Below, one piece after another: positions 573 through 56,580 of a stretch of 64,000 bases of DNA. Within the stretch, counting starts at the first letter, position 1; each line of letters opens with the position of its first letter. Position numbers and translations under genes: made by a program. The notes under the pieces were generated by a model. The model made no database searches, was not told where the DNA came from, and saw only the letters and a list, made by a program, of their open reading frames with translations. Location: the IMG/VR virus record IMGVR_UViG_3300020442_000005, positions 124,001 to 188,000 of that record, one strand, 5' to 3'.

Positions 573-1407
573 AAAATCCCACAACAAAAAAAGAAATGTC
601 GGGATTATTTACGAGCAATTGATTTTGACTGTCTCGAAAGGAATTGTAAAAAATAATCCAAAGCTTGTTGAAAGCGCGAAAAGTATTATTAAAAAACATT
701 TTGTACCTGGCACCGAGCTATACAAAGAGCACAAACTCTTTCAAGCGCTTGTCAAACCACATATTGATAATGATTCGTTGGCAACATCAATTTTAGGCGA
801 GGCAAAAAAAGCAGCAAGAGCCCACGATTCGAATCGATTAGAACGTGAAAAATCACGACTCATAAGAGACATAAATCTAACTTTTGGAAAAGGCTTCTAT
901 GGTACACGTATCAAGGAATACAAGGAGTTTGCTACAGTACAGACGTTAATGAACGATTGGCGCCAAAATAGCACTAATATTCAGCGTATTGTTGAATATG
1001 AGCAAAAGGTACACAACATACTTACATCTGAAAAAACAGTAAAAACATTGTCTGAGCATAAATCACCTGATGCTGATAATCTTGTCGTAAAAATAATGAC
1101 AGAAAAATTTAATCAGAAATACGGTTCTAAACTTACTGATCAGCAAAGCATGCTTATAAAAAATTATGTAATGTCAGATAAGAAAATTAATTTTGAATCG
1201 ACACTCAATTCTATACGAGAAAACTGTATTAGAGAGTTAAATCGTTATTCAATCAACTGTGAATCATCAATAGTAAAAAGCAAAATAGATCCTGTCATTT
1301 TAGAACTAAAACAACTGGATACAGCAAATCTAAATGACGAAAACTTTAGCAAATTTATGACTTTGTGTCATTTGCAAAAAGAGCTTAAGGAGAGAACAAA
1401 TGGATAA
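565..1407 (+). CDS. Head-module protein, putative prohead core/assembly factor
   Basis: 280 aa helical ORF with an SD (GGAGG), overlapping both neighbours and lying between the putative portal and the protease. Confidence 0.5.
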   Translation: MTRKSHNKKRNVGIIYEQLILTVSKGIVKNNPKLVESAKSIIKKHFVPGTELYKEHKLFQALVKPHIDNDSLATSILGEAKKAARAHDSNRLEREKSRLIRDINLTFGKGFYGTRIKEYKEFATVQTLMNDWRQNSTNIQRIVEYEQKVHNILTSEKTVKTLSEHKSPDADNLVVKIMTEKFNQKYGSKLTDQQSMLIKNYVMSDKKINFESTLNSIRENCIRELNRYSINCESSIVKSKIDPVILELKQLDTANLNDENFSKFMTLCHLQKELKERTNG

Positions 1408-2011
1408 TGCCCTTAGATTATTACAGGAATGGAATGCTTTTTCATACGATAGAGAACAGATACTTGAGGAAAGAGCAACCAATGGCGGCCGGTATGTCAT
1501 GAGAGGCGTGCTGCAAAAATCCAACACGTTAAACCAAAACGGAAGAATATATCCGAAAGAAATATTAGAACGCGAAGTCCGAAATTATCAAAAGTTTATT
1601 GCAGAACGTAGAGCACTTGGTGAATTAGATCATCCAGAATCTTCAGTAGTTGAACTTAAAAACGCATCACACCTTGTAACTGAGGCTTACATGGAAGGGG
1701 ATATATGCTATGGAGTGGTTGAAATCCTTGATACACCGAGTGGAAAAATACTTAAATCACTTGTTGACGCAGGCGTTACTCTTGGTATTAGTTCTCGTGG
1801 TGTTGGGTCTACTCGACGTGAAGGTGACCACCAAGTGGTTCAAGATGATTTTCAGCTTATTTGTTGGGATTTTGTTAGTGAGCCATCTACTCCTGGGGCA
1901 TTCATGATGAAAGAAGGCCGTGAAATAAAAGAATCGGATTTAAAAAAATATTTTAATAAATCTGACAGAGTGGATAGAATACTTAACGATATTTTAGATT
2001 GGAGAAAATAA
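1400..2011 (+). CDS. Prohead core protease, T4 gp21-like
   Basis: Motifs NQNGRIYP, ALGELDHP, SHLVT, ILDTPSGKIL, GISSRGVGS and DFVSEPSTPGA; SD AAGGAG. Confidence 0.95.
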   Translation: MDNALRLLQEWNAFSYDREQILEERATNGGRYVMRGVLQKSNTLNQNGRIYPKEILEREVRNYQKFIAERRALGELDHPESSVVELKNASHLVTEAYMEGDICYGVVEILDTPSGKILKSLVDAGVTLGISSRGVGSTRREGDHQVVQDDFQLICWDFVSEPSTPGAFMMKEGREIKESDLKKYFNKSDRVDRILNDILDWRK

Positions 2012-6392: not shown

Positions 6393-8372
6393 ATGTCTTT
6401 TACATTAAATCAGTTGACCGAAGGTATCCGTCAGCGTCATATGGGCGCTCAACACCAACGGTTGACAGAAAAGTGGAACCGAACTGGTCTACTTAGAGGT
6501 CTTCAAGACCAATCACGCGAGAACATGGCTGTTCTTTTGGAAAACCAAGCCGCTCAAGTTCTTCGCGAAGCAAACACACTCGGTGGTACTACCAACGCAA
6601 CATCTGGAAACGCATCAGGTGATATCCGTGGATTCCAAAACATCGCATTTCCAATCGTTCGTCGTGTATTCGGTGGATTGGTTGCTAATGACCTTGTTTC
6701 TATCCAACCAATGTCTCTTCCAAGTGGACTTTTGTTCTACTTAGATTACACATACGGATCTTCAAACGGTGAAGTTGACACAGGCTCAGGTACTGATGCA
6801 GCTACTTATGCTGCAGGTCAATCGATCTACAACTCTCCAACTGGTAAATCAATCCAAGAAGGATCTTTTGCTGTTGGTGGTCAATACGATTTAGCTGGAT
6901 CTGGTTTCTCTCGTCGTCATGCTGAAGTTGAATTATCAGGTCACTCTGGTGAAACTACTGCTATTGAGTTTGGTATTATTAACCAGTCTGGTAAGTGGGA
7001 AAAAGGTAACATCATCACAGCTGTAGGATCATTGACCGGTGCTTCTGGTCGATTCATGCAGTTTGACCCACAGGTAACTACAGCTCTTGAAAACGGTACT
7101 ATCTCTCACGTACAATTTGCACGTGTTGATGTAGGCTACTTGTCAGGCTCTGGTTTCCAAGCTGATCTTACTCTTATCAAGGATGTAGCTCTTTCTATGG
7201 ATGACGCTTCGACTCTTGAAGAGGACGGTGTGGCTCCTGAAGTCGTACCTGCATCATTTCAAGCTGGAAACGGAATCCGTAACTTGCGTCGCTTGAATCA
7301 GTTGGTAACTATTCCATCTGCCACAAACGTTGTTTCTGCGGCTCCTTTAGCGACTACTAGCACATCAAATGCATTCGTTCTTATGACACTTATCGGTACA
7401 GGTTCTGCTTCTAGAACTGCAACTGGTGCTGGTGGTGCTCTTCACGGTGGTGACGCTGATGATGATTTGAACATATCATTTGTTCTTGGATCAAACCTTG
7501 ACGTTGATAACACAATCGGCGATGCACTTACTATCCCTGCTTTCGAGTCTAACTTGGCTGCAAACGGTGCTTCTGTATCTCCAGTTATTCCTGAAATCGA
7601 CATCAAGATTGAATCTTTGTCTGTAACTGCTGTAACTCGTAAGTTGCGTGCACGATGGTCTCCAGAGCTTGCTCAAGACTTGAACGCATACCACTCATTG
7701 GATGCAGAAGTTGAATTGACTCAGATCCTTTCTGAGCAAATCGCTCTTGAACTTGATCGCGAAATCTTGAACGACTTGTTGACACAAGCTAACGGTGCTA
7801 ACTTCTTCTGGTCACGTGCTCCTGGTAAGTTCGTAAACAAAGAAACTGGCGCTGCTGCTAACAAGGCTTCTTCATTGGCCGGCGGTCCTGCATTCACTGG
7901 TACAGTACGCGAATGGTACGAGACTTTGGTTGAAACCATCATCGACGCTTCTAACACAATCCATCGTAAGACTCTTCGTGGATCTGCTAACTTCATCGTG
8001 GTTGGACCTGATGTTGCTACAATCCTTGAAAGCTCTGTATTGTACAAGCCTGTTTACAGCCTTGACGGTGACGGACAAGTTGGTGCTGGAATGACTATCG
8101 GTGCTGAAAAAGTTGGTTCATTGTCTAACCGTTTCACAGTGTACAAAGATCCTTACTTCCCACGTAACAAGATTCTTATCGGTTACAAAGGTGGATCTTA
8201 CCTTGAAACTGGTTACGTCTATGCTCCATACGTACCTCTGATCGTAACTCCAACAATCTTTGCTCCTGAGGACTTCACTCCTCGTAAGGGTGTAATGACT
8301 CGTTACGGTAAGAAAATGGTTCGTTCGGACTTCTACGGAACTGTAACTTGTTTGGATATGAACATTATCTAA
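6393..8372 (+). CDS. Major capsid protein, T4 gp23-like, with a large central insertion
   Basis: Motifs LLENQ, FPIVRRVF, VSIQPMSLPSGLLFYL, RKLRARWSPELAQDLNAYH, LSEQIALELDREIL, YAPYVPL and PRKGVMTRYG. Confidence 0.97.
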   Translation: MSFTLNQLTEGIRQRHMGAQHQRLTEKWNRTGLLRGLQDQSRENMAVLLENQAAQVLREANTLGGTTNATSGNASGDIRGFQNIAFPIVRRVFGGLVANDLVSIQPMSLPSGLLFYLDYTYGSSNGEVDTGSGTDAATYAAGQSIYNSPTGKSIQEGSFAVGGQYDLAGSGFSRRHAEVELSGHSGETTAIEFGIINQSGKWEKGNIITAVGSLTGASGRFMQFDPQVTTALENGTISHVQFARVDVGYLSGSGFQADLTLIKDVALSMDDASTLEEDGVAPEVVPASFQAGNGIRNLRRLNQLVTIPSATNVVSAAPLATTSTSNAFVLMTLIGTGSASRTATGAGGALHGGDADDDLNISFVLGSNLDVDNTIGDALTIPAFESNLAANGASVSPVIPEIDIKIESLSVTAVTRKLRARWSPELAQDLNAYHSLDAEVELTQILSEQIALELDREILNDLLTQANGANFFWSRAPGKFVNKETGAAANKASSLAGGPAFTGTVREWYETLVETIIDASNTIHRKTLRGSANFIVVGPDVATILESSVLYKPVYSLDGDGQVGAGMTIGAEKVGSLSNRFTVYKDPYFPRNKILIGYKGGSYLETGYVYAPYVPLIVTPTIFAPEDFTPRKGVMTRYGKKMVRSDFYGTVTCLDMNII

Positions 8373-8444: not shown

Positions 8445-8753
8445 ATGAAAATATCAAAAAGACAACTTAAAAGAATTATTAGAGAAGAAAAGGCCCGAAT
8501 CCTTGAAGAAACCAAGTCCTTTGACCGATCGGACGCTCACTACGTTGGCGGCGTAAAAATGACTGGACCAGGCGCTGATACTATTTTTGGCACAAAAAAG
8601 CGTGACGATAGATCGATCGAAAACAAGATCATGAGTATGGGCCCAGAACAACACCGCGATCTGATTGCTTTTATCTTTGAAAAAGCGCAATATACCTTAG
8701 GGCTTGACGGATTAGAGGATGCGATTGCAGAAGCTATGGATAAATTACGATAA
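8445..8753 (+). CDS. Leader-family protein (MKISKRQLKRIIREEKARILEE), putative internal head protein
   Basis: Shared N-terminal leader; unique C-terminus. Confidence 0.75.
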   Translation: MKISKRQLKRIIREEKARILEETKSFDRSDAHYVGGVKMTGPGADTIFGTKKRDDRSIENKIMSMGPEQHRDLIAFIFEKAQYTLGLDGLEDAIAEAMDKLR

Positions 8754-8763
8754 GAGTTAGAAA

Positions 8764-9174
8764 GTGAAAATTACAAGAAAACAGTTACGGTATATTATCA
8801 AAGAAGCTACTCGAAAAGGAAAATCTAAAAAGAGAGGTTTCAAGATAAAATTTGATATGGGTGATAAACTGGTGTGTCCTCACAGCCCAGAATCAATGCC
8901 AGCTGGTTTCGCTCATCCTCAAGGTCTTTCTGGTGTTATAAAACGAAAAGAAGTCTCGCGGGGTAAAGGTATCATGTACTATAAGCTTATCATCGGTGGA
9001 AAGACTTTTGAGGGCGAGTTTAGTGGTTATGGATATGCTTCACGCGGTATTGACGATTTTGGTCCATTTTCCATGAGACTTAAACAAGAACACCGAAACA
9101 TTCCAATGCCGTTGCATGAACCTCAAATAGTATTCGCCTGGGCAAATGGTGATTTAAAAATTTTTGATGTATAG
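8764..9174 (+). CDS. Leader-family protein (MKITRKQLRYIIKEA) with a possible SH3/KOW-like cargo
   Basis: GTG start; shared leader; FDMGDKLV followed by beta-rich sequence. Confidence 0.7.
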   Translation: MKITRKQLRYIIKEATRKGKSKKRGFKIKFDMGDKLVCPHSPESMPAGFAHPQGLSGVIKRKEVSRGKGIMYYKLIIGGKTFEGEFSGYGYASRGIDDFGPFSMRLKQEHRNIPMPLHEPQIVFAWANGDLKIFDV

Positions 9175-9185
9175 TGAGAAAAATA

Positions 9186-9581
9186 ATGAAAATTACAAAA
9201 AGACAACTTAAAAAAATTATTAAAGAAGAATACTCGCGGTTAAAGCAACAGGGTCTGATTACAGAAACGAGGATGTCATCAGGCAGATTAATTGTTAGTC
9301 AAGTTAATCAGCTTAAGCAAGCATATTTTATTCTAGATCCTGAAAGAAATTACGATCGGCAGTCTATAATAGAACAACAAAAAGTAGTTGAAAGACTTAA
9401 ATCAGAAATGAATCCACGAGATTTTAAAATTGCATCACGGATGGCAGATATATATGTTGAATACTTAGGAACTGATTTTGGAGGCGGTGGCAGGATGACG
9501 CCATACGAAGAGGCGTTGTTTGACGAGGCCGAAGCGCTTGGATCTAAGATTGGTGTATCTGCTCAAGTATTATTCAGGTAA
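9186..9581 (+). CDS. Leader-family protein, long leader (MKITKRQLKKIIKEEYSRLKQQGLITE)
   Basis: Start reassigned from 9174 to the ATG at 9186, where the leader begins. Confidence 0.75.
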   Translation: MKITKRQLKKIIKEEYSRLKQQGLITETRMSSGRLIVSQVNQLKQAYFILDPERNYDRQSIIEQQKVVERLKSEMNPRDFKIASRMADIYVEYLGTDFGGGGRMTPYEEALFDEAEALGSKIGVSAQVLFR

Positions 9582-9591
9582 GGACACCAAA

Positions 9592-9816
9592 ATGAAAATT
9601 ACAAAAAGACAGTTAAGACAGATTATCAAAGAAGCTACAAGCAAGGACCGGCTTGATTACGAGGCAGGTATTGACATGGGTTTTTCTGATTACAATAGAG
9701 ATATTAGAGATCGTGATTTATCAAAGCATAGTGAATCATTTCGCAAAGGCTATAGATATGGCTATAGCCAAGCAATGCGAATGGCTCAAGACTTTGATGA
9801 TGGTAATCCGTACTAA
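9592..9816 (+). CDS. Leader-family protein (MKITKRQLRQIIKEA) with a short Y/G-x-x-x-G-repeat cargo
   Basis: Start reassigned to ATG 9592 (SD AAGGA); contains DYEAGIDMGF and FRKGYRYGY. Confidence 0.75.
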   Translation: MKITKRQLRQIIKEATSKDRLDYEAGIDMGFSDYNRDIRDRDLSKHSESFRKGYRYGYSQAMRMAQDFDDGNPY

Positions 9817-9825
9817 GAGACTTTC

Positions 9826-10386
9826 GTGAAAATTACAAGACGTCAGATTAGACATGTTATCATGGAAGCATTACAACCAAAAATGTTACCTGATGGTTGG
9901 AAAATGCAGATACATGCTGGTGATTCTCTAAGTGCTGAGGGTCATTCTTTACTAGTGGTCCTTCTAAACAGTAACGGAAGAACTATAGGAAAAGTCGGCG
10001 CTGATAGGCATTGGACCGATAACCGTTGTATTGCAGACGTGTTTGAGGTTACAGGATCTGAAGTTCGTGGTGGTTATGGACCAACACTATATGATGTTGC
10101 AATAGAGTGGGCAACACTGAATGGTCTTGGATTGGTAGCAGACCGCTCAGGTGTGTCTGCAGAAGCAGAAAGAGTATGGCAAAAATATCTTACAGCCAGG
10201 CCCGATGTATCAGCTCACCGGTTACCTGATGGATATTGTGTTGGGCCCGAGGCAGAGTATGGCGGCGGAGAATGGTATCTTCACAGATACACAAAAGAGG
10301 AAAACCTAATTCCTGCTATGGCTAGATTTGGTCAGCTAGAAATAATATATGACGATGAAATTGAGGACATGAATCTGTACATGTAG
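9826..10386 (+). CDS. Leader-family protein (MKITRRQIRHVIMEA) with a GNAT-like acetyltransferase cargo
   Basis: Acetyl-CoA-binding-like motif EVRGGYGPTLYDVAIEWA followed by VSAEAERVWQKY. Confidence 0.6.
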   Translation: MKITRRQIRHVIMEALQPKMLPDGWKMQIHAGDSLSAEGHSLLVVLLNSNGRTIGKVGADRHWTDNRCIADVFEVTGSEVRGGYGPTLYDVAIEWATLNGLGLVADRSGVSAEAERVWQKYLTARPDVSAHRLPDGYCVGPEAEYGGGEWYLHRYTKEENLIPAMARFGQLEIIYDDEIEDMNLYM

Positions 10387-45062: not shown

Positions 45063-45683
45063 ATGCATTGGACAACCAACATCGATCCAAAAGTAAGAGA
45101 ACTAGAATTACGACACAACCCTGTGATGATACGAGTTAATAAATTCACAGAGGAAAGCGCCGCTGAATTTGCAACAAAAATGGCTATGGCACATAACACT
45201 GGACAATCTGTTATCCCGGTCGTTATTGATTCATATGGCGGACAGGTATACAGTCTTATGAGTATGATAAGTTCTATAAATGCCTCAGAAATCCCGGTAG
45301 CAACTATTGTAGAAGGAAAAGCAATGTCCTGTGGAGTAATATTGTTTTCATGCGGCCACGAAGGATTAAGATTTGTCACTCCAGAAGCTACTTTGATGAT
45401 TCACGATGTATCTTCGGGTGCGTTCGGAAAAAACGAGGAAATTCAAGCATCCGCAAAAGAAACAAACCGACTCAATAAAATGATTTATACTATTCTTGCT
45501 GATAACTGCAAAAAACCACGTGATTATTTTACGAAAGAAGTAAAAAGAAGAGGCCGCGCGGATTGGTATGTAACTCCAAACAAAGCTGTGAAAATGGGTT
45601 TAGCAGATCACGTGGGGCTTCCTAAACTTCAAATTGACGTCGACGTACAAATTAATTTAGCAATCCCAGATAAAGATGCATAA
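45063..45683 (+). CDS. clpP: ClpP-family protease
   Basis: Motifs IDSYGG, AMSCG (catalytic Ser), LMIHD (His) and DWY...AVKMGLAD. Confidence 0.88.
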   Translation: MHWTTNIDPKVRELELRHNPVMIRVNKFTEESAAEFATKMAMAHNTGQSVIPVVIDSYGGQVYSLMSMISSINASEIPVATIVEGKAMSCGVILFSCGHEGLRFVTPEATLMIHDVSSGAFGKNEEIQASAKETNRLNKMIYTILADNCKKPRDYFTKEVKRRGRADWYVTPNKAVKMGLADHVGLPKLQIDVDVQINLAIPDKDA

Positions 45684-45706: not shown

Positions 45707-46171
45707 ATGTCGACATCAATTTTAAAATGGGTTCACATGCACAAAGCATACGTGGAGTGGTTTCACTCCGCGCACTTGTTATCAAAGGGATCAAGTTTTG
45801 CTGGTGACCATGTAAATCTTTATGGAAAAATATACCAAGAAGCTTTTGAGCAATACGACGGTATTATAGAACGTGTGATTGGTATTACAAACAACGAAGA
45901 TTGCGCCTGTCCATCTAGTATCAATATGGGTGCATTGGGTATTTTACAAAAGTACCCATCTCCATCAAACGTTCCTGCCTTGAATATTGCTACGTCTGCA
46001 TTGCAGCTCAACAAAGACTATTGTCATTTTTTGAATGACCTTGTTTTAAATCTTAGGCAATCAGGAAAAATTACTTTGGGAACAGAAGATTTAATCGCTG
46101 GAACATGTAATACTATTGAAGGGTATACTTATTTGTTGCAGCAACGCGTCAAAGAATCAATTGGAGTTTAA
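45707..46171 (+). CDS. Dps/ferritin-like protein
   Basis: HSAHLLSKGSSFAGDH...Y...YDGIIER matches the Dps ferroxidase signature; late-type motif at 45680. Confidence 0.75.
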   Translation: MSTSILKWVHMHKAYVEWFHSAHLLSKGSSFAGDHVNLYGKIYQEAFEQYDGIIERVIGITNNEDCACPSSINMGALGILQKYPSPSNVPALNIATSALQLNKDYCHFLNDLVLNLRQSGKITLGTEDLIAGTCNTIEGYTYLLQQRVKESIGV

Positions 46172-46172
46172 A

Positions 46173-46574
46173 ATGAAAATATCAAAAAGACAACTTAAGA
46201 GAATCATCAGAGAAGAATACTCACGCCTCAAGAGTCAAGGACTTATCAACGAAATGTCGGGTGTTGCATTTCCAGATCCGGAATTAGAGCAAGATACTCC
46301 GTATGATCGACTTATGGATGGTGCAGAAAATGAACCATACGATGGATACGTAGAAAAAATGGCACTTGCCCATGTTGAGAGCCAAGCTGGTAGATTAAAC
46401 TTTGATGAATATGCAGACTTTGCTTGGGATTATGGATACCGAACTGATGACGACTTAGATCAACTTGAAGAATGGTGGGAAGCAGCAATCGAGGAAAGTC
46501 GTGGTTATTCCTTCCGCGATTCTTTTGGCGATGGATATGGCCCTGGAGAGCGAAGACCGACAAGGCGAAGATAA
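46173..46574 (+). CDS. Leader-family protein, long leader (MKISKRQLKRIIREEYSRLKSQGLINE), acidic cargo
   Basis: Start reassigned to ATG 46173 (SD GGAG); late-type motif at 46125. Confidence 0.75.
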   Translation: MKISKRQLKRIIREEYSRLKSQGLINEMSGVAFPDPELEQDTPYDRLMDGAENEPYDGYVEKMALAHVESQAGRLNFDEYADFAWDYGYRTDDDLDQLEEWWEAAIEESRGYSFRDSFGDGYGPGERRPTRRR

Positions 46575-46951
46575 TGAAAATTACAAGAAGAAAATTAAAG
46601 CAGATTATCGAATCCGTTATGAACGAAGCTGTTCAAGATCCAGAATATGACAGAGAATATGACCTTGTTCAAAATAACATTAAAACACAACGTGGTTTTC
46701 TAGGATTTGCAATGCGAAGTTTGGAATCTAGTTATGGAAATCGATTTTATAATCATGGAAGGGGCAACATTGGAATATATCTTACACTTATAGGACAACA
46801 CGTAAGAGATGGACAAGACTCAAGAGGTGGCACCGTCGAAGGTCATATCGCATCAATAGAAGGCAAGCTCGCAGAATATCCCGATCTTCTCACACCAGCA
46901 GGGCGAGGACGACTGGATGCGTTGCTGGACCACTTAAAACAAAACTATTAA
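46574..46951 (+). CDS. Leader-family protein (MKITRRKLKQIIESVMNEA)
   Basis: Start reassigned to the TAATG overlap at 46574. Confidence 0.75.
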   Translation: MKITRRKLKQIIESVMNEAVQDPEYDREYDLVQNNIKTQRGFLGFAMRSLESSYGNRFYNHGRGNIGIYLTLIGQHVRDGQDSRGGTVEGHIASIEGKLAEYPDLLTPAGRGRLDALLDHLKQNY

Positions 46952-46965
46952 TCAGGGGAAAACGA

Positions 46966-47232
46966 ATGAAAATTACAAGAGCAAAATTAAAGCGGATTAT
47001 TCGTGAAGAAAAAGCACGCATTTTCGAGATGCATCACGGGCGTCCTCATGGAGATTTGGATAGTCTCGTTGAAGACACTCTTGAATATATTTCAGATGGT
47101 GCCTTTTCTAATGGTATGCAGATAGTACAATATGTTCGAGATGCAGGTCGCGATTATGGCCTTTCTGCAAGTGATCAGGATAAAGCAATTGCAAGAATTA
47201 TTAACGGTATGATGGCTGGCCCAAGATTTTAG
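46966..47232 (+). CDS. Leader-family protein (MKITRAKLKRIIREEKARIFE)
   Basis: Shared leader; small helical cargo. Confidence 0.75.
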   Translation: MKITRAKLKRIIREEKARIFEMHHGRPHGDLDSLVEDTLEYISDGAFSNGMQIVQYVRDAGRDYGLSASDQDKAIARIINGMMAGPRF

Positions 47233-47241
47233 GAAAATAAA

Positions 47242-47757
47242 ATGAAAATATCAAAAAGACAGCTTAAGAAGATAATACAAGAAGAATACATCGCCTTGAA
47301 AAGACAGGGTTTAATTACTGAATACGGTCTTGGCGATGAGTTTGACGGAATGCGCAATCCAGGCAGACGTGCACAAGATAGATCTATACCCGGAAGTATT
47401 GCTCGGGTTGATTGGATTAAACTCCACCATGACCCTTATTATGATAATAACCCACCAGAATGGCTCGGAAACCCAAAAGAAGAGTTGGATGCATTCCTTG
47501 ACTTAATAATTTCTGCCGAGCTTGAGAATGTACTGGATGGCTTAGGAATGTCAGAACTATATAGACCAGCGATGGATGAGATCGACTACGAAGGAATTTT
47601 CCACGGCGGCAAAACAATCATGAAAATACTTGAAAATGTTTTTCCTTATTCTGATGGTTCATATTTATACAGAGCCTTAGAAAGATGGGCTGCTGAGCAT
47701 ACAAGTTCAGGAAAAATACATTCTGGCGAAATCCGGTATACCCAGCCGCAGAGATGA
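47242..47757 (+). CDS. Leader-family protein, long leader (MKISKRQLKKIIQEEYIALKRQGLITE)
   Basis: Shared leader; unique cargo. Confidence 0.75.
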   Translation: MKISKRQLKKIIQEEYIALKRQGLITEYGLGDEFDGMRNPGRRAQDRSIPGSIARVDWIKLHHDPYYDNNPPEWLGNPKEELDAFLDLIISAELENVLDGLGMSELYRPAMDEIDYEGIFHGGKTIMKILENVFPYSDGSYLYRALERWAAEHTSSGKIHSGEIRYTQPQR

Positions 47758-48161
47758 TAAACGTAATGAGCAAGATATTAACAAAAGCCTTTTGGGATTC
47801 TGTATGGAATTGGTGTAAGATCAACTGGAAATTTCTTGTTGGTTTTGCAATACCCTGTATTTTGCTGATTGCGGTTAATAGACGTAAGGCATTCAAGTTG
47901 CTTGAAAAAGGCATTGAGTTCCGTAATCAACAGTTAGATGTAGCACAGAGAGCTTCGGATCTCGAGTCCGATGGGAAGGTCAAGAACGCTAAGGAATTTG
48001 CTGATCGTGTAGAGGAGGTGACAACCAGACACGAGGAGGCTCTTCGCAAGCTTGGTGAAAACGTCCAAGACCGGCGTGAAGAATTGGGTGGGTCTGATGC
48101 TGCTGTTGTAACGGACGCTTTGGCGGATCGCTTTAATTTGAAGAATGGAGACAACAAGTGA
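47754..48161 (+). CDS. Membrane-anchored coiled-coil protein, possible i-spanin
   Basis: N-terminal TM segment (FLVGFAIPCILLIAV) followed by a coiled coil; near the endolysin. Confidence 0.45.
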   Translation: MINVMSKILTKAFWDSVWNWCKINWKFLVGFAIPCILLIAVNRRKAFKLLEKGIEFRNQQLDVAQRASDLESDGKVKNAKEFADRVEEVTTRHEEALRKLGENVQDRREELGGSDAAVVTDALADRFNLKNGDNK

Positions 48162-48835
48162 ATGCTAAAAAACTAAGAAAAATTATCGCTGAAGAGTTAG
48201 CGGTTATCTCAAAATCAGCAATTGACGACACTGTAATGAATATTCTAAGTGATGAAGGTGGCGCAGCTGGACTCGATCCAATCGAAAAAGCTTTAAAAGA
48301 TTTAGAAAACGATCAGATGGAACTTCCGGAAGAAAGTATCGAAGAATTAATATCAAGTGTTGCAGGCGTTAAACGCCATCGCGATGGTGACTATATAGAC
48401 ACAACTCAACTTGAAGGAAAAGCATATTTTACAAAACGCAGATTAAATCAGATAGTCAAAGAAGAATACAAACGCTTAAAGGATGAGGGACTAATATCAG
48501 AAACCTTTAAAAGTAAGTCAACTTTTGGCGGCAGATCCCCAGAATATAAAATGCGAATGCCTAAGTTGTACGGTACACAAATGCAAGATGCAAGACGGGG
48601 TAACCGACTACCACCAGAAAGTTCAAATTGGTTTAGATTTGCAAAACATTTGGATATCGGTATACTAGATCTAGATGAAGTAGCACATGAACTTCGTTTT
48701 AAAAATTTTGAACACATGGACGCAGCTGTGTCACCACGTGGTCTAAATCAATCAGAAGCTGATCGAGTTGCTGATATAATGTATGATTTATACATGATTG
48801 AAGATATCGATGTATACGACGCTTTGGAGAAATAA
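48158..48835 (+). CDS. Leader-family protein with two leader copies
   Basis: N-terminal MNAKKLRKIIAEE and internal FTKRRLNQIVKEEYKRLKDEGLISE. Confidence 0.7.
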   Translation: MNAKKLRKIIAEELAVISKSAIDDTVMNILSDEGGAAGLDPIEKALKDLENDQMELPEESIEELISSVAGVKRHRDGDYIDTTQLEGKAYFTKRRLNQIVKEEYKRLKDEGLISETFKSKSTFGGRSPEYKMRMPKLYGTQMQDARRGNRLPPESSNWFRFAKHLDIGILDLDEVAHELRFKNFEHMDAAVSPRGLNQSEADRVADIMYDLYMIEDIDVYDALEK

Positions 48836-49416: not shown

Positions 49417-50313
49417 ATGGCTGTTGACAAAGAGTTTTATAACGAAGCATCGGCTTCAAAGCTTGGCTGGGAACCTGAATGGTTTATTCCCGGCCATAAT
49501 CTTTTTGATAAAAAATTAACAAAAGCTATCAAAGAATGGCAAACCACACGTGGTCTGTATGCTGACGGCATGTGCGGACCTGGTACGTTTCGACATATCA
49601 ATGCTGAAATAGAATCACAGCGTGAGCTAGACGCTTTAGGTTGGGTATCAGATTCTTCAGATGTAATTTGGTGGGGAGATAAGCCCATAAAGATCGACTG
49701 GCCTTCTAACAAGGTACACACGTTTAAGGATGAAGGTTTTCCTTATCCTATTAGCAAGGGCGTTACAAAAAACTCTCGTAAAAGAAAGATTAATTCTTTC
49801 GTGACGCATTGGGACGTATGCCTTAGTTCCATGAGCTGCGCAAAAGTTCTAGCCAAGCGTAATGTATCCGTGCATTTCTGTATTGACAACGATGGCACGA
49901 TCATTCAGCTTCACGATCTTAATGACTCTTGTTGGCATGCTGGCAACAGCAAAGTAAACCGTACAAGTGTCGGCGTTGAGATTTCAAACGCATATTATCA
50001 AAAATATCAAGGATGGTATAAAAAGAACGTAGGTAAGGAAAGACCAATCATGTCTGGTGCGTTAGCACAGAATAAACCTCTTAAAGACTTTACTTGGTTC
50101 TACCCAGAACAGATTGAGGCTCTTAAAGCCTTATACAAAGCAATCCACGAGGGATGTGATGTGCCTCTTCAGTCTCCGGCAAATAAGTGGGCTTTCGATA
50201 GCTCGGCAGCTGGTGGAAGCTGGAAAGGTTTTATGAATCACTTTCACTGTTCAAAAAAGAAGATTGACTGTGGTGGATTAGATATTGAAAAACTTTTAGA
50301 AGAAATTAAATGA
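49417..50313 (+). CDS. Endolysin: peptidoglycan-binding domain plus N-acetylmuramoyl-L-alanine amidase (Amidase_2)
   Basis: Motifs AIKEWQTTRGLYADGMCGPGT, THWD, SVHFCIDNDGTIIQ, CWHAG, SVGVEI and NHFH...KIDCG. Confidence 0.88.
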   Translation: MAVDKEFYNEASASKLGWEPEWFIPGHNLFDKKLTKAIKEWQTTRGLYADGMCGPGTFRHINAEIESQRELDALGWVSDSSDVIWWGDKPIKIDWPSNKVHTFKDEGFPYPISKGVTKNSRKRKINSFVTHWDVCLSSMSCAKVLAKRNVSVHFCIDNDGTIIQLHDLNDSCWHAGNSKVNRTSVGVEISNAYYQKYQGWYKKNVGKERPIMSGALAQNKPLKDFTWFYPEQIEALKALYKAIHEGCDVPLQSPANKWAFDSSAAGGSWKGFMNHFHCSKKKIDCGGLDIEKLLEEIK

Positions 50314-50885: not shown

Positions 50886-50902
50886 TAAGGAAGATAAACA
50901 AA

Positions 50903-51760
50903 ATGAAAGCAAACTCTGCGCGCAAGTTAAGACATTTGGTTCGTCGTATCATCGTAGAATCACAAAGCTTGGATAATCAGATTCTCAGTAGATCTGATTA
51001 TATGCGTGGATTGATGTTATTTATTGAAAATAACCCGGGAACTACTACAGACGAAATGTTTGATTCTCCGGTTGCAAATGCAATTATTCCAATTGGTATA
51101 AGAGAAAGAGCAATATTGCTTTGGGTAAAGAAGCTAATCAAGGATGGTTTTATTATTTCAAAAAGATATAGGCTTTATTCAACTGGCAAAGCAGATTATG
51201 TAAATCACAATGTTGTTTTAGAAAACGTTATTATGGAAAGCGCCAAGTTCTCAAGTTATGATGCTTTCACAAGACAGGAAAATCTTGACCTTCGAATGAT
51301 GGAACATGATAAAGGTCATATCGATCTAGAAAACAATTCTGCAATTGCGAAAGCTTTTCAAGTATATTCGGAAACAACAACAGTTTCTTTGTTTCGCGGA
51401 ATATACAACACCGAAACACGGATGCTTTCAAATATGCAGCCAGGCGACACATTCCAATTTGGTCGTGTAACTTCACTATCAGAAAACTTTGAAATTGCAA
51501 AAAAGTTTGCAATAAATAAAAAAATCGTTGAGCTAGTACCAGGCACGAAAGGTTGTTTTAGTTTTGTCGATTTTCTGGTCGACTACTATGATGGATGGAA
51601 GCGAAAGGATCCTATGGACTACGAAATGCAGGATGGTGAATGGCGCAAAGGATCGGCGGAAAGAGAGGCCGAATGGTTCGTATCCGGGGATACACAATTT
51701 CAGCTTTTAGACGTTGCAGAAAGAGATGGAATGACCGTGTACAAGATCAAAACTCTTTAA
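50903..51760 (+). CDS. Leader-family variant carrying a winged-helix-like domain and an ADP-ribosyltransferase domain
   Basis: Leader RKLRHLVRRIIVES. R-S-E ART motifs: LFRG, VTSLSEN..IAKKFA and EREAEW. Confidence 0.65.
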   Translation: MKANSARKLRHLVRRIIVESQSLDNQILSRSDYMRGLMLFIENNPGTTTDEMFDSPVANAIIPIGIRERAILLWVKKLIKDGFIISKRYRLYSTGKADYVNHNVVLENVIMESAKFSSYDAFTRQENLDLRMMEHDKGHIDLENNSAIAKAFQVYSETTTVSLFRGIYNTETRMLSNMQPGDTFQFGRVTSLSENFEIAKKFAINKKIVELVPGTKGCFSFVDFLVDYYDGWKRKDPMDYEMQDGEWRKGSAEREAEWFVSGDTQFQLLDVAERDGMTVYKIKTL

Positions 51761-51768
51761 AATAATAC

Positions 51769-51797
51769 GTATAAATACTCTTACTAATGGTTATAAT
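51769..51797 (+). promoter_or_regulatory. Promoter GTATAA-N17-TATAAT
   Basis: 17-bp spacing; upstream of the methyltransferase. Confidence 0.65.
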
Positions 51798-51820: not shown

Positions 51821-52786
51821 ATGATCAATTATCTTTATCGGCCAACAAACCTGCAAGTCTCCAGTAAAATCGTTCATCAAGGCGATAGGGTGCCATTTAA
51901 GTGGGCCGGCGCTAAAAATAGGATGTTTAAAAAATACATTTCAACTGGATTCTTTCCGGCAAAGCAACCAAAAATATTTGTTGACATGTTTGCAGGTACT
52001 GGTGCGGTTGGACGTTGGATAGCTCAAAATTATCCAAATACGACGGTAGTTCTAAACGAAACTTGTGGTGAATTAGTTGGTATGTATAAACAGCTTAAGA
52101 CCAAGAATTATAATGCGTTCATTGCAGCATATAGTAAGCATGTTAAAGCATATGCAAGTTATTCTACTGTTGAAGATCGTAAAAAATATTATTACGGTGT
52201 TAGAAACCAATACGCGTTATCCTATCAAAACATGACTCCAGCAGAAGAAGCTGCAGCTCTTTTCTATATGCTACAAACGGGCTTCAATGGAATATGGCAG
52301 ACATCAGACAACTTTAACAATAGATACGCGTCGCCCGCTGGACTAATGACTTGGAAGCCTTCTGGCGATCTATTTGATATTAATAGAATAAAAAAATATT
52401 CAGAGTTTATTGATCGCTGTGTATTACTTAATGATGACTTTGAAGCAACTTCGTGCTTTATGGGTTCCGATACCTGGTTTTATGCTGATCCACCATATCG
52501 TGTTTCAAAAGCAAAATATGCATCAGCAGGTGATTTTACAAACAACGATCAAATTAGATTATGTAATTTTCTTAATGATGCACACAAGGCAAATGATATG
52601 TGTTCAATGAGCAACAGAGAAGATTCAGATAAGCAAATTGGAAAAGAAGTTGGTACAATAACTAAGGGTTGGTTTGCTGATAAATTTAACGATGACTGGA
52701 ATGTTTCGTATTATGATGTTAAATACACAGCTGGCCGACACAACTTAGGTCAAAAAGGAAAAGAAGTTCTTATTAAAAATTATTAA
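51821..52786 (+). CDS. DNA adenine methyltransferase, Dam/D12 class
   Basis: Motifs PFKWAGAK, DMFAGTG, GFNG and YADPPY. Confidence 0.92.
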   Translation: MINYLYRPTNLQVSSKIVHQGDRVPFKWAGAKNRMFKKYISTGFFPAKQPKIFVDMFAGTGAVGRWIAQNYPNTTVVLNETCGELVGMYKQLKTKNYNAFIAAYSKHVKAYASYSTVEDRKKYYYGVRNQYALSYQNMTPAEEAAALFYMLQTGFNGIWQTSDNFNNRYASPAGLMTWKPSGDLFDINRIKKYSEFIDRCVLLNDDFEATSCFMGSDTWFYADPPYRVSKAKYASAGDFTNNDQIRLCNFLNDAHKANDMCSMSNREDSDKQIGKEVGTITKGWFADKFNDDWNVSYYDVKYTAGRHNLGQKGKEVLIKNY

Positions 52787-52797
52787 ATGGAGTCAAA

Positions 52798-53550
52798 GTG
52801 ATATTTGATCTTTACGGTGATGGAATAGGCACAGTAGAATACGTACAACACATGGGCGAAGACATAACTATTGTGAACAGCGCAAGAGTTAGCTTTGGAA
52901 AACACAAGGAGACGATGGATGAAAAAGACAGAAAACTTATCAGATATCTCATCAAGCACAGACACACATCAACCCTCGAACACAATATTGCTACGTTTAG
53001 GTTTGTGGTACCTCTGTATGTGCGTAGCCAGCACCATCGTCATAGAACTTGGTCTTATAACGAAATTAGTCGTCGATATACTGCAGAAAATTTGAGATTT
53101 TATGAGCCACAAAAATTTAGAACACAACACAAATCAAACCGACAAGCCTCCAATCATGATGAGTTGGATCCGATTATGGGATACTTTGAAGATGGCGGAC
53201 CTAACTACGCAAGCGCATCTATTAGAAGTCATCATCGCAACAGTGTATGTTTATACAACTCATTAATGGAAAAGGGCGTATGCAGGGAACAGGCAAGAGG
53301 CGTTTTGCCACAGAACATGTACACCGAATATTATGGAACAGCTAACTTAAATAATCTTCTAAAATTTTGCGGGTTGCGTCTTCATGATGGTGCGCAGCTT
53401 GAAATACAAAAAGTTGCTGAGGGTATAATTGGCATATGCAAAAATCTTTGGCCTATCACAATCGAAGCATACATTGCTAGTTTGGAAGACCGAGCACTAG
53501 CTGAAAGGCTAGAAAATATCGAGATTATTAAGGCCAAACCGCATAATTAG
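52798..53550 (+). CDS. thyX: Flavin-dependent thymidylate synthase
   Basis: Motifs IVNSARVSF, HTSTLEH, RHRTWSYNEISRRY, EQARGVLP and AQLEI. Confidence 0.95.
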   Translation: MIFDLYGDGIGTVEYVQHMGEDITIVNSARVSFGKHKETMDEKDRKLIRYLIKHRHTSTLEHNIATFRFVVPLYVRSQHHRHRTWSYNEISRRYTAENLRFYEPQKFRTQHKSNRQASNHDELDPIMGYFEDGGPNYASASIRSHHRNSVCLYNSLMEKGVCREQARGVLPQNMYTEYYGTANLNNLLKFCGLRLHDGAQLEIQKVAEGIIGICKNLWPITIEAYIASLEDRALAERLENIEIIKAKPHN

Positions 53551-53982: not shown

Positions 53983-54279
53983 ATGAGAATATCAAAAAGA
54001 CGCTTACGCATGATTATTAAAGAAGAATATACAAAACTTAAAAGACAAGGGTTGTTGAGTGAATCTAGATTCAGCAGCAGAGGATCTTCGTCTAGATTAA
54101 CAGTATCTCAGCTCAGAAGACTGATCAGAGAAGCGCTCGATGAAGAAGATGATTCTGAAGAGGAAGATGATAAACCAGGTCCGGGTGAGGACGCTGAGGG
54201 CCGAATGGGTGCTGGTGATCCTAAAAACGCAAAGAAAAACCCAAGAAAGAAAAAACCCAAAGCGCAAGACATGAGATAA
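53983..54279 (+). CDS. Leader-family protein with a tandem double leader
   Basis: MRISKRRLRMIIKEEYTKLKRQGLLSE followed by RLTVSQLRRLIREALDEE; late-type motif at 53936. Confidence 0.75.
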   Translation: MRISKRRLRMIIKEEYTKLKRQGLLSESRFSSRGSSSRLTVSQLRRLIREALDEEDDSEEEDDKPGPGEDAEGRMGAGDPKNAKKNPRKKKPKAQDMR

Positions 54280-54301
54280 ATCCTTCAATCCGGAGAAACC
54301 A

Positions 54302-54652
54302 ATGAGAATATCAAAAAGACATCTTAAAAGAATCATCAAAGAAGAATATACAAAATTAAAACGCCAAGGACTTATTAGTGAAGGTTTTCGCGATATGCGC
54401 GGTGGCCATGGCCGTCAAATGAGCTTGCAAGATTACGAAGAGCAAGACCCAAACATGATGGAAGACAATTATGACGCTGCAGTGGAAGAGTGTATGGCTG
54501 CTATTCCAGGAATGATGAAAAAGATTATTTCAATGGGAATGGGACACACTGTAATGAATGACATTTATCATATCTGCGCGCCAATCTGCAAAAGCTACGG
54601 CGTTGATGCTGACGAAGTTTCAGAAGAAATTATGGAAAGACTTGGATACTAA
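54302..54652 (+). CDS. Leader-family protein, long leader (MRISKRHLKRIIKEEYTKLKRQGLISE)
   Basis: Shared leader; SD GGAG. Confidence 0.75.
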   Translation: MRISKRHLKRIIKEEYTKLKRQGLISEGFRDMRGGHGRQMSLQDYEEQDPNMMEDNYDAAVEECMAAIPGMMKKIISMGMGHTVMNDIYHICAPICKSYGVDADEVSEEIMERLGY

Positions 54653-54654
54653 AG

Positions 54655-54960
54655 ATGAAAGTGACCAAGAGACAGATAAAGCGTATTATTCGTGAAGAAT
54701 ACAATAAGATGCGTAGAGAACAGCGTATTGTTACTGAAAGCTATTTTAAAAACCTTTTAGTAGAAATAGAGGATCATCTTTTGTATTTGGCTGACATGCA
54801 TGCCGGTAGTGTACCTATTGAAAAGGTTGTACGGCCATTAAAAAGAAAGTTTAAGCATTTCTCTGGAATGACAAGGGCTACAGTTTTTGCAGAGCTTATG
54901 GAAATGCAGCCCTATTTTAGCGTGATACGGATTGATGGTGACAACATAATTTCTTACTAA
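54655..54960 (+). CDS. Leader-family protein (MKVTKRQIKRIIREEYNKMRREQRIVTE) with a winged-helix-like cargo
   Basis: Shared leader; helix-G-strand-helix-helix-hairpin pattern in the cargo. Confidence 0.72.
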   Translation: MKVTKRQIKRIIREEYNKMRREQRIVTESYFKNLLVEIEDHLLYLADMHAGSVPIEKVVRPLKRKFKHFSGMTRATVFAELMEMQPYFSVIRIDGDNIISY

Positions 54961-55026: not shown

Positions 55027-55833
55027 ATGCCTGAAGGACCTGAAGTCAAACGGATTGGTGAAGGATTAGCCCGAGCCATTTCTGGTAAAACACTTATAGA
55101 AGCCAACATATTGTCTGGCAGATATGCAAAAAAACCACCATCCGGGTGGGAACACATCAACGCTTCAATTCCGCTGCGCGTTATTGGCGCTGGTGTACAC
55201 GGAAAGTTTTTGTATTGGTTGTGCGATAATGAAACCTTCTTTTATTCAACTCTTGGAATGACTGGTTCTTGGAATAAAAAAGCAAAGAAGAATGCACGAT
55301 TGGAGTTCAAATTTTCTGATGGAAGTTCAGTGTATTATAACGACACTAGAAATTTCGGTACATTCAAGGTCGTTAAAGGAAAGCAAAACCTTATTGACAA
55401 ACTTACTGGTCTAGGTCCAGATATGTTAGCTGAGGATGTAACCGACCAAAAGTTTACCGAACGCCTAAGAAAAAAATCTAACTGGGGTATAACAAAAGCA
55501 CTCATGGACCAGTCAGTAATTTGTGGTGTTGGAAATTATATAAAAGCTGATTCGCTTTGGCTAGCCAAGATTAATCCTCACAAAACAGTGTCCGAATTAA
55601 CGGATGGTGAGTTGTCTATATTAAATCGTTCAATCAAAAAAATCATTAGAGAATCTTATGAATCTGGTGGTGCAACGATTAAGTCATACTCTGGTTTTGA
55701 TGACGAGGATGGCGAGTATGGTAGACGTTTTTTGGTTTACGGCCAGGACACCGACCCTGATGGAAATGAAGTTATCAGGGAAGAAACAGCTGATAAAAGA
55801 AATACTCATTGGGTCCCGGTAGTACAAAAATGA
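55027..55833 (+). CDS. Fpg/Nei-family DNA glycosylase/AP lyase with a zincless finger
   Basis: N-terminal MPEGPEV, HGKF, LGMTG, DTRNFG and H2TH LMDQSVICGVGNY; the C-terminus lacks the four Cys. Confidence 0.92.
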   Translation: MPEGPEVKRIGEGLARAISGKTLIEANILSGRYAKKPPSGWEHINASIPLRVIGAGVHGKFLYWLCDNETFFYSTLGMTGSWNKKAKKNARLEFKFSDGSSVYYNDTRNFGTFKVVKGKQNLIDKLTGLGPDMLAEDVTDQKFTERLRKKSNWGITKALMDQSVICGVGNYIKADSLWLAKINPHKTVSELTDGELSILNRSIKKIIRESYESGGATIKSYSGFDDEDGEYGRRFLVYGQDTDPDGNEVIREETADKRNTHWVPVVQK

Positions 55834-55994
55834 AAATTGGCGATCTGGTAAGAGTTGTGGAGTCTCATATTAGCGCGGGTGACTCCGGAGTGGTAGTTGA
55901 ATGCACAAATAAGGCAGTAAACGTTTATTGGGCAGCTGCAGATGCAACATACTGGATAGAAAAAATATATCTCGAGGTCATACATGAAAATTAA
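55830..55994 (+). CDS. Small KOW/SH3-like protein (MKIGDLVRV)
   Basis: Start reassigned to the ATGA overlap at 55830. Confidence 0.6.
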   Translation: MKIGDLVRVVESHISAGDSGVVVECTNKAVNVYWAAADATYWIEKIYLEVIHEN

Positions 55995-56580
55995 AACTAT
56001 CTTAGCGGATCCACCATGGAAACTTTGTACCGGCGGGTCAAAGTCGCTAGCCGTGCATACACATTATCCAGTCCAGAAAAAAGACGAAATAATTCAAACA
56101 ATGAAAGATTGGCTTGACCAATACGATATTGCAGACGAAGCTCATCTATATCTATGGACCGTCAATTCATATTCTGCTGGTTACAGTCGAGGCATATTGG
56201 ATGCTGTTGATGTATGTAATGCGCTAGGATTTAAGCCGATAACAAATATAGTATGGACTAAGCCTCAATCAAATCCAACCCCATATGGTCAAAGAGCTGT
56301 TGAGCTATGTTTATTTGGAGCGCGTTGGAGAAAAGGTATGCATAGGGAAGTGATGTACAAGGGGACTCAAAACCCCGAATGTGTTGCAAATCCTGGATTA
56401 GTCAAGAGTGTCGATTGGTTTACGGCAGATAGACGTGACCACTCGCGAAAACCCGACGAGTTCTATAATTATATTATGAACCGTTCACAAGGACCCTATC
56501 TAGAGCTCTACAGTCGAACCACTCATCCAGGCTGGAATGTAGTAGGAAATCAAACTGATAAATTTAAAATAGGAAATTAA
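55984..56580 (+). CDS. MT-A70-family N6-adenine methyltransferase
   Basis: Motifs ILADPPW, HLYLWT, IVWTK, HSRKPDEFY and YLELYSR. Confidence 0.88.
   Translation: MKIKTILADPPWKLCTGGSKSLAVHTHYPVQKKDEIIQTMKDWLDQYDIADEAHLYLWTVNSYSAGYSRGILDAVDVCNALGFKPITNIVWTKPQSNPTPYGQRAVELCLFGARWRKGMHREVMYKGTQNPECVANPGLVKSVDWFTADRRDHSRKPDEFYNYIMNRSQGPYLELYSRTTHPGWNVVGNQTDKFKIGN

Follow-up and report, generated by a model that had tools for sequence, protein, structure and literature searches.

Phage ADP-ribosyltransferases (ARTs) that are packaged in the head are already known, from T4 Alt and from Alt/VIP2 or N4-type domains fused to MuF. The open reading frame (ORF) at positions 50903..51760 (+) of a 64,000-nucleotide stretch of phage DNA raises the question of whether an ART of another family can travel in the same way. 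The stretch, referred to here as the window, covers positions 124,001 to 188,000 of IMG/VR record IMGVR_UViG_3300020442_000005, a virus record of 273,025 bp with 39.9% G+C and an estimated completeness of 82%. A sequence-only reading of the window had described the product of this ORF as a leader-tagged ART with a winged-helix-like segment, possibly a small analogue of T4 Alt that is injected into the host and may be cut into separate DNA-binding and ART products. We found that the product, here named P0001, combines a leader, a winged helix (wH) and an ART of the Mod type, and it may well be a precursor that is packaged and cut, a reading to which we give about even credence.

The ORF has an ATG start and 285 codons plus stop, and a ribosome-binding site read from the sequence, AAGGAAG, is located at 50887..50893 (+), 9 nt 5' of the ATG. 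Two full-length orthologs that are 93% and 89% identical to P0001 were found in marine metagenomes, the closer of them on a TARA Oceans contig, and both (P0002 and P0003) begin at the same Met. Comparison of P0001 with the TARA ortholog gave ratios of nonsynonymous to synonymous substitution (dN/dS) of 0.12 for the whole protein, 0.11 for the N-terminal domain and 0.09 for the C-terminal domain. As the ratio is low in both domains and orthologs exist, we conclude that the gene is real and under purifying selection throughout. Scans of IMG/VR that used P0001 and an alignment of its close family returned no related loci, and across the whole family the relatives of P0001 carry no annotation in public data. 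The strings singled out in the sequence-only reading are all present in P0001: RRIIVES at residues 14-20, LMLFIENNPG at 37-46 and LIKDGFIISKRYRLY at 78-92 in the winged-helix part, VVLE at 104-107, VIMES at 109-113, and LFRG, TSLS and EREAEW at 163-166, 190-193 and 253-258, respectively, in the ART part.

The ART domain and its family

On the evidence of profiles and of a structural model, the C-terminal 173 residues of P0001 (residues 113-285; 51239..51757, +) are an R-S-ExE ART of the Mod (ModA/ModB) family. In a PHROG profile search, residues 112-273 matched phrog_832, 'RNA polymerase ADP-ribosylase', with an E-value of 2.9e-8, and tblastn returned ModA/ModB-type ARTs from phages of Klebsiella, Erwinia and E. 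coli that share 25-33% identity. When an ART family profile built from 24 relatives was compared with the T4 enzymes using hhalign, T4 ModB matched it end to end at 97.8% (E 9e-13, 162 columns), as did T4 ModA at 92.5% (E 5e-7). T4 Alt did not match the same profile (probability 0.06%, E 0.75), so the kinship with Alt that had been suggested is not supported. As the domain matches Mod and lacks an Alt profile match, P0001 would be Alt-like only in its proposed route of delivery. A published survey likewise treats Mod as a separate R-S-E family (PMC9503650).

Precomputed matches to PF26816 (Mod_ADP_RT) were found for P0002, where the match is weak, and for the stand-alone relatives P0004-P0021. 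A direct Pfam scan of P0001 returned no match because the PF26816 model is absent from the Pfam set that was scanned, and the Pfam ART models matched P0001 only below threshold. Searching PDB sequences with the single P0001 sequence gave no match; a PDB profile search with the ART family gave only a weak match to Vis, in which the R, STS and ExE motifs align.

The AlphaFold2 (AF2) model of P0001 has a mean predicted local distance difference test score (pLDDT) of 74.9, with most of the ART core at 84-94. Its best fold matches, found using Foldseek against BFVD, were models of phage ModA/ModB-like proteins (E 2.6e-11, template modelling score 0.73), and Foldseek against the PDB gave E 2e-6 with a probability of 1.0. 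VIA-align extended the ART fold over residues 113-285 in matches to Tre1, Vis, ExoS/T, iota Ia, C2-I, CDTa, VIP2 and C3 (Z 8.7-10.8). These proteins share the fold, but they are only 9-19% identical to the domain and are bacterial toxins that act via the type VI or type III secretion systems or as binary toxins.

The catalytic residues can be assigned in the same alignments. R165 (51395..51397, +) lies in L-F-R-G, is invariant, and aligns with ModB R73 and ModA R72. The S-x-S motif S191-L-S193 (51473..51481, +) corresponds to the invariant S79 and S81 of alignment A4 and aligns with S99-x-T101 in ModB and S96-x-S98 in ModA; its counterparts read S-F-T in ModB, S-A-S in ModA and S-T-S in Alt. 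The ExE motif E255-A-E257 (51665..51673, +) is followed by W258, and both Glu are invariant in a set of 27 sequences that includes T4 ModA, ModB and Alt. It aligns with E171-x-E173 in ModB, E163-x-E165 in ModA and E-A-E in Vis. The E-R-E that precedes it in EREAEW was considered as the ExE motif and rejected, as the conserved pair is E255 and E257 (EAEW). Within the R-S-E clade, an ExE motif marks arginine-directed enzymes, and the domain is best explained as a mono-ADP-ribosyltransferase of the arginine type. Overall, R165, G166, S191, S193, E255, E257 and W258 show little or no variation among 24-27 family members including ModA and ModB, and in ModB R73 is needed for catalysis (PMC10468400). 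The ART fold with R-S-E motifs that had been read from the letters was therefore borne out by the phrog_832 match, the Foldseek and VIA-align matches and the invariant R, SxS and ExE.

The T4 Mod enzymes are the closest characterised relatives. The catalytic domains are homologous end to end, with the same R, S-x-S(T) and E-x-E, a similar size (approximately 170-200 residues) and an aligned N-terminal helical part that has an HDK-type segment, though sequence identity is only approximately 20%. ModA and ModB have neither a leader nor an extra domain and are made post-infection, whereas P0001 has a leader and a wH domain. A genome-wide search found only one ART of this Mod kind in the phage.

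The leader, the prohead protease and the capsid protein

Residues 1-19 of P0001 (50903..50959, +) form a basic leader, M-K-A-N-S-A-R-K-L-R-H-L-V-R-R-I-I-V-E, that ends in I-V-E19 before S20 and is a putative capsid-targeting propeptide with the first protease site. It belongs to a large set. Type 1 leaders, M-K-I-[ST]-K-R-Q-L-[KR]-R-I-I-[KR]-E-[EA], head approximately 26 ORFs, and type 2 leaders, L-R-x-x-[IV]-R-x-I-[IL]-x-E-[SA], head nine ORFs in the genome, including that of P0001. With both types taken together, the leader is carried by approximately 40 of approximately 320 crude gene calls (12%). The leader motif was found 79 times in the ORFs of the genome against 3.0 +/- 2.0 times in 200 shuffles, an approximately 26-fold excess. 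All of the leaders end in [IL]-x-E, and nearly all of the tagged genes encode small proteins with no assigned function. Many lie in arrays: one at 8445-10386, directly after the capsid gene, others at 46116-48835 and 53983-54960, and a further block near the end of the genome, at about 249,500-264,000. The leader of P0001 resembles the leaders of stand-alone ARTs.

The enzyme presumed to process these leaders is a T4 gp21-type prohead protease (Peptidase_S77) encoded at 1400..2011 (+). It matches PF03420 above the curated cut-off (E 1.3e-27) and phrog_207 (E 1.7e-49), and is 32% identical to T4 gp21. In T4, the gp21 protease trims short N-terminal propeptides from IPI-III, Alt, gp23 and gp24, and the capsid-targeting sequence (CTS) of IPII and IPIII, approximately 10 residues long, is enough to load foreign proteins (PMC9958956, PMC5694885). 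T4 gp23 itself is cut after L-T-E65 (PMC9958956). The major capsid protein encoded in the window (659 residues; 6393..8372, +) is 44-47% identical to those of immuto, Mel-JY01 and LR756508 and 32% identical to T4 gp23. Its residues 67-123 align with gp23 residues 77-133 in BLAST, and just upstream of the aligned part the two share [L]-x-E and then A..GG..NAT. In the capsid protein found here this site is L57-R58-E59 (6561..6569, +), followed by A-N-T-L-G-G, at the position of the gp23 cut between L-T-E65 and A. As the capsid protein keeps L-R-E before A at the gp23 cut site, the [IL]-x-E specificity of the protease is probably conserved. The leader variant that the sequence-only reading had picked out is thus confirmed as one of a family common to approximately 40 genes, with an [IL]-x-E end that fits the encoded gp21-type protease. 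The phage is a marine far-T4 jumbo phage and belongs, distantly, to the T4 head lineage. Relative to gp23, the capsid protein also carries an insertion of approximately 160 residues after the N-arm region and before the conserved two-thirds at the C-terminal end.

The closest known parallel to the leader family is that of T4 IPII and IPIII, which both start M-K-T-Y-Q-E-F-I-A-E, with the cut before A. In each phage, several genes share a short leader that ends in a hydrophobic residue, any residue and Glu before a small residue: F-I-A-E before A in the T4 proteins, and I-I-K-E before E/A or I-I-V-E before S here. In both, the genes adjoin an endolysin gene. However, the leader found here is strongly basic, approximately 15-19 residues long, has two subtypes and a different sequence, tags approximately 40 genes compared with the handful in T4, and is also seen inside proteins, between modules.

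Similar leaders were found in other phages. In the 484-kb genome of an uncultured huge phage (LR756508.1), the leader pattern was matched by 13 ORFs no more than 20 kb from the capsid gene, most of them at the N-terminus and with the same basic kind of leader. The tag is therefore common to distant huge-phage lineages. At least one gene of the leader type is present in Flavobacterium phage immuto, which has been cultured, and no leader genes were found near the capsid gene of Microcystis phage Mel-JY01. A full-text literature search for the leader strings found none. Two small ORFs in the window, 53983-54279 and 48158-48835 (+), each have a leader-like cassette at the N-terminus and a second one further inside, which suggests that they are mini-polyproteins. 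An apparent internal leader in the ORF at 55027..55833 was dismissed as a chance match, since this ORF encodes an Fpg/Nei glycosylase.

The winged-helix module and the junction with the ART

Between the leader and the ART lies a winged-helix 'module A' (residues 20-101; 50960..51205, +), identified using AF2, VIA-align and Foldseek. When residues 18-112 were modelled alone with 16 homologs, the pLDDT was 83 and exceeded 90 across approximately 70 residues. The modelled topology is H-(beta)-H-H-H-beta-beta, with the winged-helix fold spanning residues 27-101. The top VIA-align matches were all winged helices (Z 8-9.4), namely Fur/Nur, MarR, MecI, E2F-DP, Z-alpha, H1/H5, cullin WHB, RPA32C and the N-domain of T4 MotA, and wH domains also filled the top Foldseek matches in the PDB and AFDB. 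The models therefore uphold the winged-helix segment of the sequence-only reading as a fold class, without pointing to a specific wH family: Pfam HTH_24 and MarR models matched 6-8 of the 16 module members below threshold, a profile search of the PDB with the module found nothing, and a feature search of the ESM Atlas gave no usable match.

The module belongs to a small, phage-only family, with a mean column identity of 63%, that was found in only about a dozen clusters when 1.8 billion representatives were searched. It is single-copy in this genome. In other phages it is joined to unrelated C-terminal regions, and in several relatives it is at the extreme N-terminus, with no leader ahead of it and a leader after it. 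Pfam identified nothing in these alternative cargos except DUF5661 in P0032. In a 110-kb marine contig of a related phage (L003:1025-5507), the trio of DUF444 (YeaH-like), SpoVR and PrkA genes, which in bacteria forms a stress-kinase operon, adjoins a wH-module gene.

The wH module and the ART are separated by a linker, H-N-V-V-L-E107-N-V-I-M-E112 (residues 102-112; 51206..51238, +), which appears to include a relic leader and contains candidate cut sites after E107 and E112. The model has a single long stretch of low confidence, residues 99-120 (pLDDT <50), which is predicted to be disordered. The comparison with stand-alone ARTs from related phages is informative here. These proteins are 185 residues long, share 50-62% identity with the ART domain of P0001 and start M-K-L-L-R-x-T-I-R-R-I-L-L-E-[AS]. 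Anchored by the S-Y-D motif that comes next, their leader aligns exactly with N-V-I-M-E-S in P0001, and 19 of the 20 close stand-alone ARTs have a leader with its Glu aligned to E112. The V-x-E and I-M-E of the linker are kept in all three orthologs. A stand-alone ART was also found among at least 13 consecutive genes that carry a type 2 leader (M-K-x-L-R-x-x-I-R-K-x-x-L-x-E) in a 265-kb contig (L002:2484-12361).

Where other cargos are attached to the wH module, complete leaders are found at the joint. In P0027-P0031, the module is joined to its cargo by a full type 1 leader, …H-N-V-I-T-K-E-N-K-M-K-L-S-K-R-Q-L-K-R-I-I-R-E-E…. In P0034, a full type 2 leader, KLRRIIIES, occupies the same junction and is followed by the start of an ART. 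P0034 is encoded by a 569 bp contig (L015:97-549) that includes a divergent wH module, the leader and the first approximately 40 residues of the ART; a stop codon 20 nt before the contig end reflects either a truncated gene or an assembly artefact. The simplest reading of these joints would be that modules are swapped at leaders, which act as cleavable cassettes, with P0001 consisting of a leader, the wH module, a degenerate leader and the ART. An internal cut after E112 and/or E107 is plausible, and we propose it tentatively. The split into two products that had been suggested thus gains comparative support from the leaders aligned to E112, the full leaders at other wH joints and the disordered junction, while the cut itself stays a candidate.

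Delivery of P0001 with the DNA and its alternatives

By analogy with T4, we propose that P0001 is pre-loaded in the head, where the head protease cuts it, and that on injection it modifies host proteins, a reading that in our view is evenly poised. The 19-residue basic amphipathic leader would direct the precursor into the prohead core, as in IPII, IPIII and Alt, and the S77 protease would trim it after I-V-E19. A second cut after E112 and/or E107 would then produce a wH protein of approximately 10 kDa and an ART of approximately 20 kDa inside the head, where both would be held until infection, when they would leave along with the DNA. Drawing on host nicotinamide adenine dinucleotide (NAD+), the ART would modify arginines of host proteins before any phage gene is expressed, and the wH would either be injected alongside it or serve as a carrier or in assembly. 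DNA binding by the wH module is a guess. The targets of the nearest characterised enzymes are the alpha subunit of RNA polymerase for ModA, and ribosomal protein S1, EF-Tu and trigger factor for ModB (PMC9503650, PMC10468400). ModB also attaches NAD-capped RNA to proteins (PMC10468400).

The proposed life history is that of T4 Alt, with a propeptide ending in [IL]-x-E, a gp21-type protease and an R-S-ExE ART (PMC9958956, PMC9503650). Alt differs in being 682 residues long with a large N-terminal region, whereas P0001 has 285 residues with a wH instead, and in that packaging has been demonstrated for Alt and is proposed here for P0001; the two are also without a profile relationship. Approximately 44% of phage ARTs are in contexts suggestive of packaging, and the MuF- or portal-fused and polyvalent packaged ARTs likewise enter the host inside the head on a conserved carrier (Iyer et al. 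2017, 2022; PMC9503650). However, the ART domains joined to MuF or portal proteins are of the Alt/VIP2 or N4 type, whereas P0001 has a Mod-family domain on a leader and wH. No MuF, portal or polyvalent domain was found on P0001, in which the ART is the sole Pfam/PHROG match.

Several points weigh against this proposal. T4 ModA and ModB are not packaged and are made after infection. The wH module has a pI of about 6-9 across its family and is not markedly basic, so its composition gives no indication of DNA binding. The basic residues are gone from the internal relic leader, and chance alone would place about 0.18 minimal sites in a protein of this size; the internal cut is therefore plausible rather than established, and what gives the site weight is its homology and conservation instead of its pattern. 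A ClpP-family protease encoded at 45063-45683 (+; PF00574, E 1.5e-27), just 5' of the leader array at 46116-48835, could be an alternative reader of the leader. As the genes around the ART gene are mixed, late co-expression cannot be read from the context. The T4 late promoter motif TATAAATA shows no enrichment, at 7 matches for 5.05 expected, and for this reason the copy found after the ART gene, at 51770-51777, is not meaningful. A scan of 46-56 kb for sigma-70 promoters and terminators gave nothing above shuffles.

Many of these points would fit P0001 being an ordinary, unpackaged Mod-type ART that is made in the infected cell like ModA and ModB, with a leader that serves translation or folding, localisation or turnover by the ClpP-family protease. 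The catalytic domain is indeed of the ModA/ModB family and not Alt, no promoter class can be assigned, genes for replication and nucleotide metabolism are nearby, and the order of the ClpP-family gene and the leader array directly 3' of it is kept in the TARA contig (L009). Nevertheless, we regard this explanation as unlikely. The leader ends in a gp21-type [IL]-x-E that is also kept at the gp23 maturation position of the capsid protein, and one leader array directly follows the capsid gene. Internal leaders between modules fit cleavage cassettes and not an N-terminal translation signal, and in T4 itself the IP and alt genes likewise sit among non-structural genes.

Alternatively, P0001 may be packaged with residues 1-112 as one long assembly propeptide, in which the wH docks the cargo to the prohead core and is then degraded or expelled, leaving only the ART to be injected. 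The wH module is more conserved than the cargos and is fused to unrelated C-terminal regions, which is the pattern of a carrier domain, and it is not strongly basic. Propeptides of more than 100 residues with several internal sites are found in the head proteins of the giant phages SPN3US and phiKZ (PMC5694885). However, a compact module with a pLDDT above 90 over approximately 70 residues is unlike a disposable peptide, several relatives have the module at the extreme N-terminus with the leader behind it, and the module is single-copy whereas approximately 40 genes have the short leader as their sole targeting signal. This arrangement, too, we consider improbable. A third explanation, that the ART domain is catalytically dead or has been repurposed (for binding, or as a pseudoenzyme) and that the gene makes nothing but an internal structural protein, would fit the sub-threshold Pfam ART matches and is very improbable given the invariant or nearly invariant catalytic residues shared with ModA and ModB, a dN/dS of 0.09 in the ART domain and a fold that matches active ARTs across the full domain.

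Returning to packaging and injection of P0001, what appears to be new is a Mod-family domain that has a T4-style but sequence-distinct targeting leader, is joined by a relic leader to a wH module, and is found in a phage with an unusually large leader-tagged set. If the proposal is correct, host-takeover chemistry has been shifted from enzymes made after entry to enzymes delivered with the DNA by the addition of a short tag. Uncultured marine jumbo phages would then carry an unusually large tagged cargo set that is readable from sequence alone, and the leader could be used as a portable packaging tag, like the T4 CTS. A broader possibility, which we advance more hesitantly than the internal cut, is that a leader cassette present on approximately 12% of genes and reused internally as a cleavable joint represents an undescribed cargo-loading system that packs dozens of proteins in marine far-T4 jumbo or huge phages. 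A Mod-type ART, possibly capable of ModB-like RNAylation, would be active at time zero, modules would be shuffled as polyproteins, and the ART-wH fusion would capture one moment in the exchange of modules where leaders join them.

The ART gene lies among genes of varied function. Upstream of it are a leader gene and the gene for an endolysin-type protein with Amidase_2 and PG_binding_1 domains (49417-50313, +). Downstream are genes for a Dam-class N6-adenine methyltransferase (51821-52786, +) and ThyX (52798-53550, +), and the Fpg/Nei DNA glycosylase (55027-55833, +) and a second DNA methyltransferase (55984-56580, +) are encoded in the same neighbourhood. Genes for ribonucleotide reductase (RNR), DnaB and UvsX are a few kb from the ART gene. 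The octamer ATAATTAT and its neighbours TATAATTA and CATACTTATA are enriched in upstream intergenic regions across the genome (16 regions against 1.3 expected), and this group may represent promoter elements.

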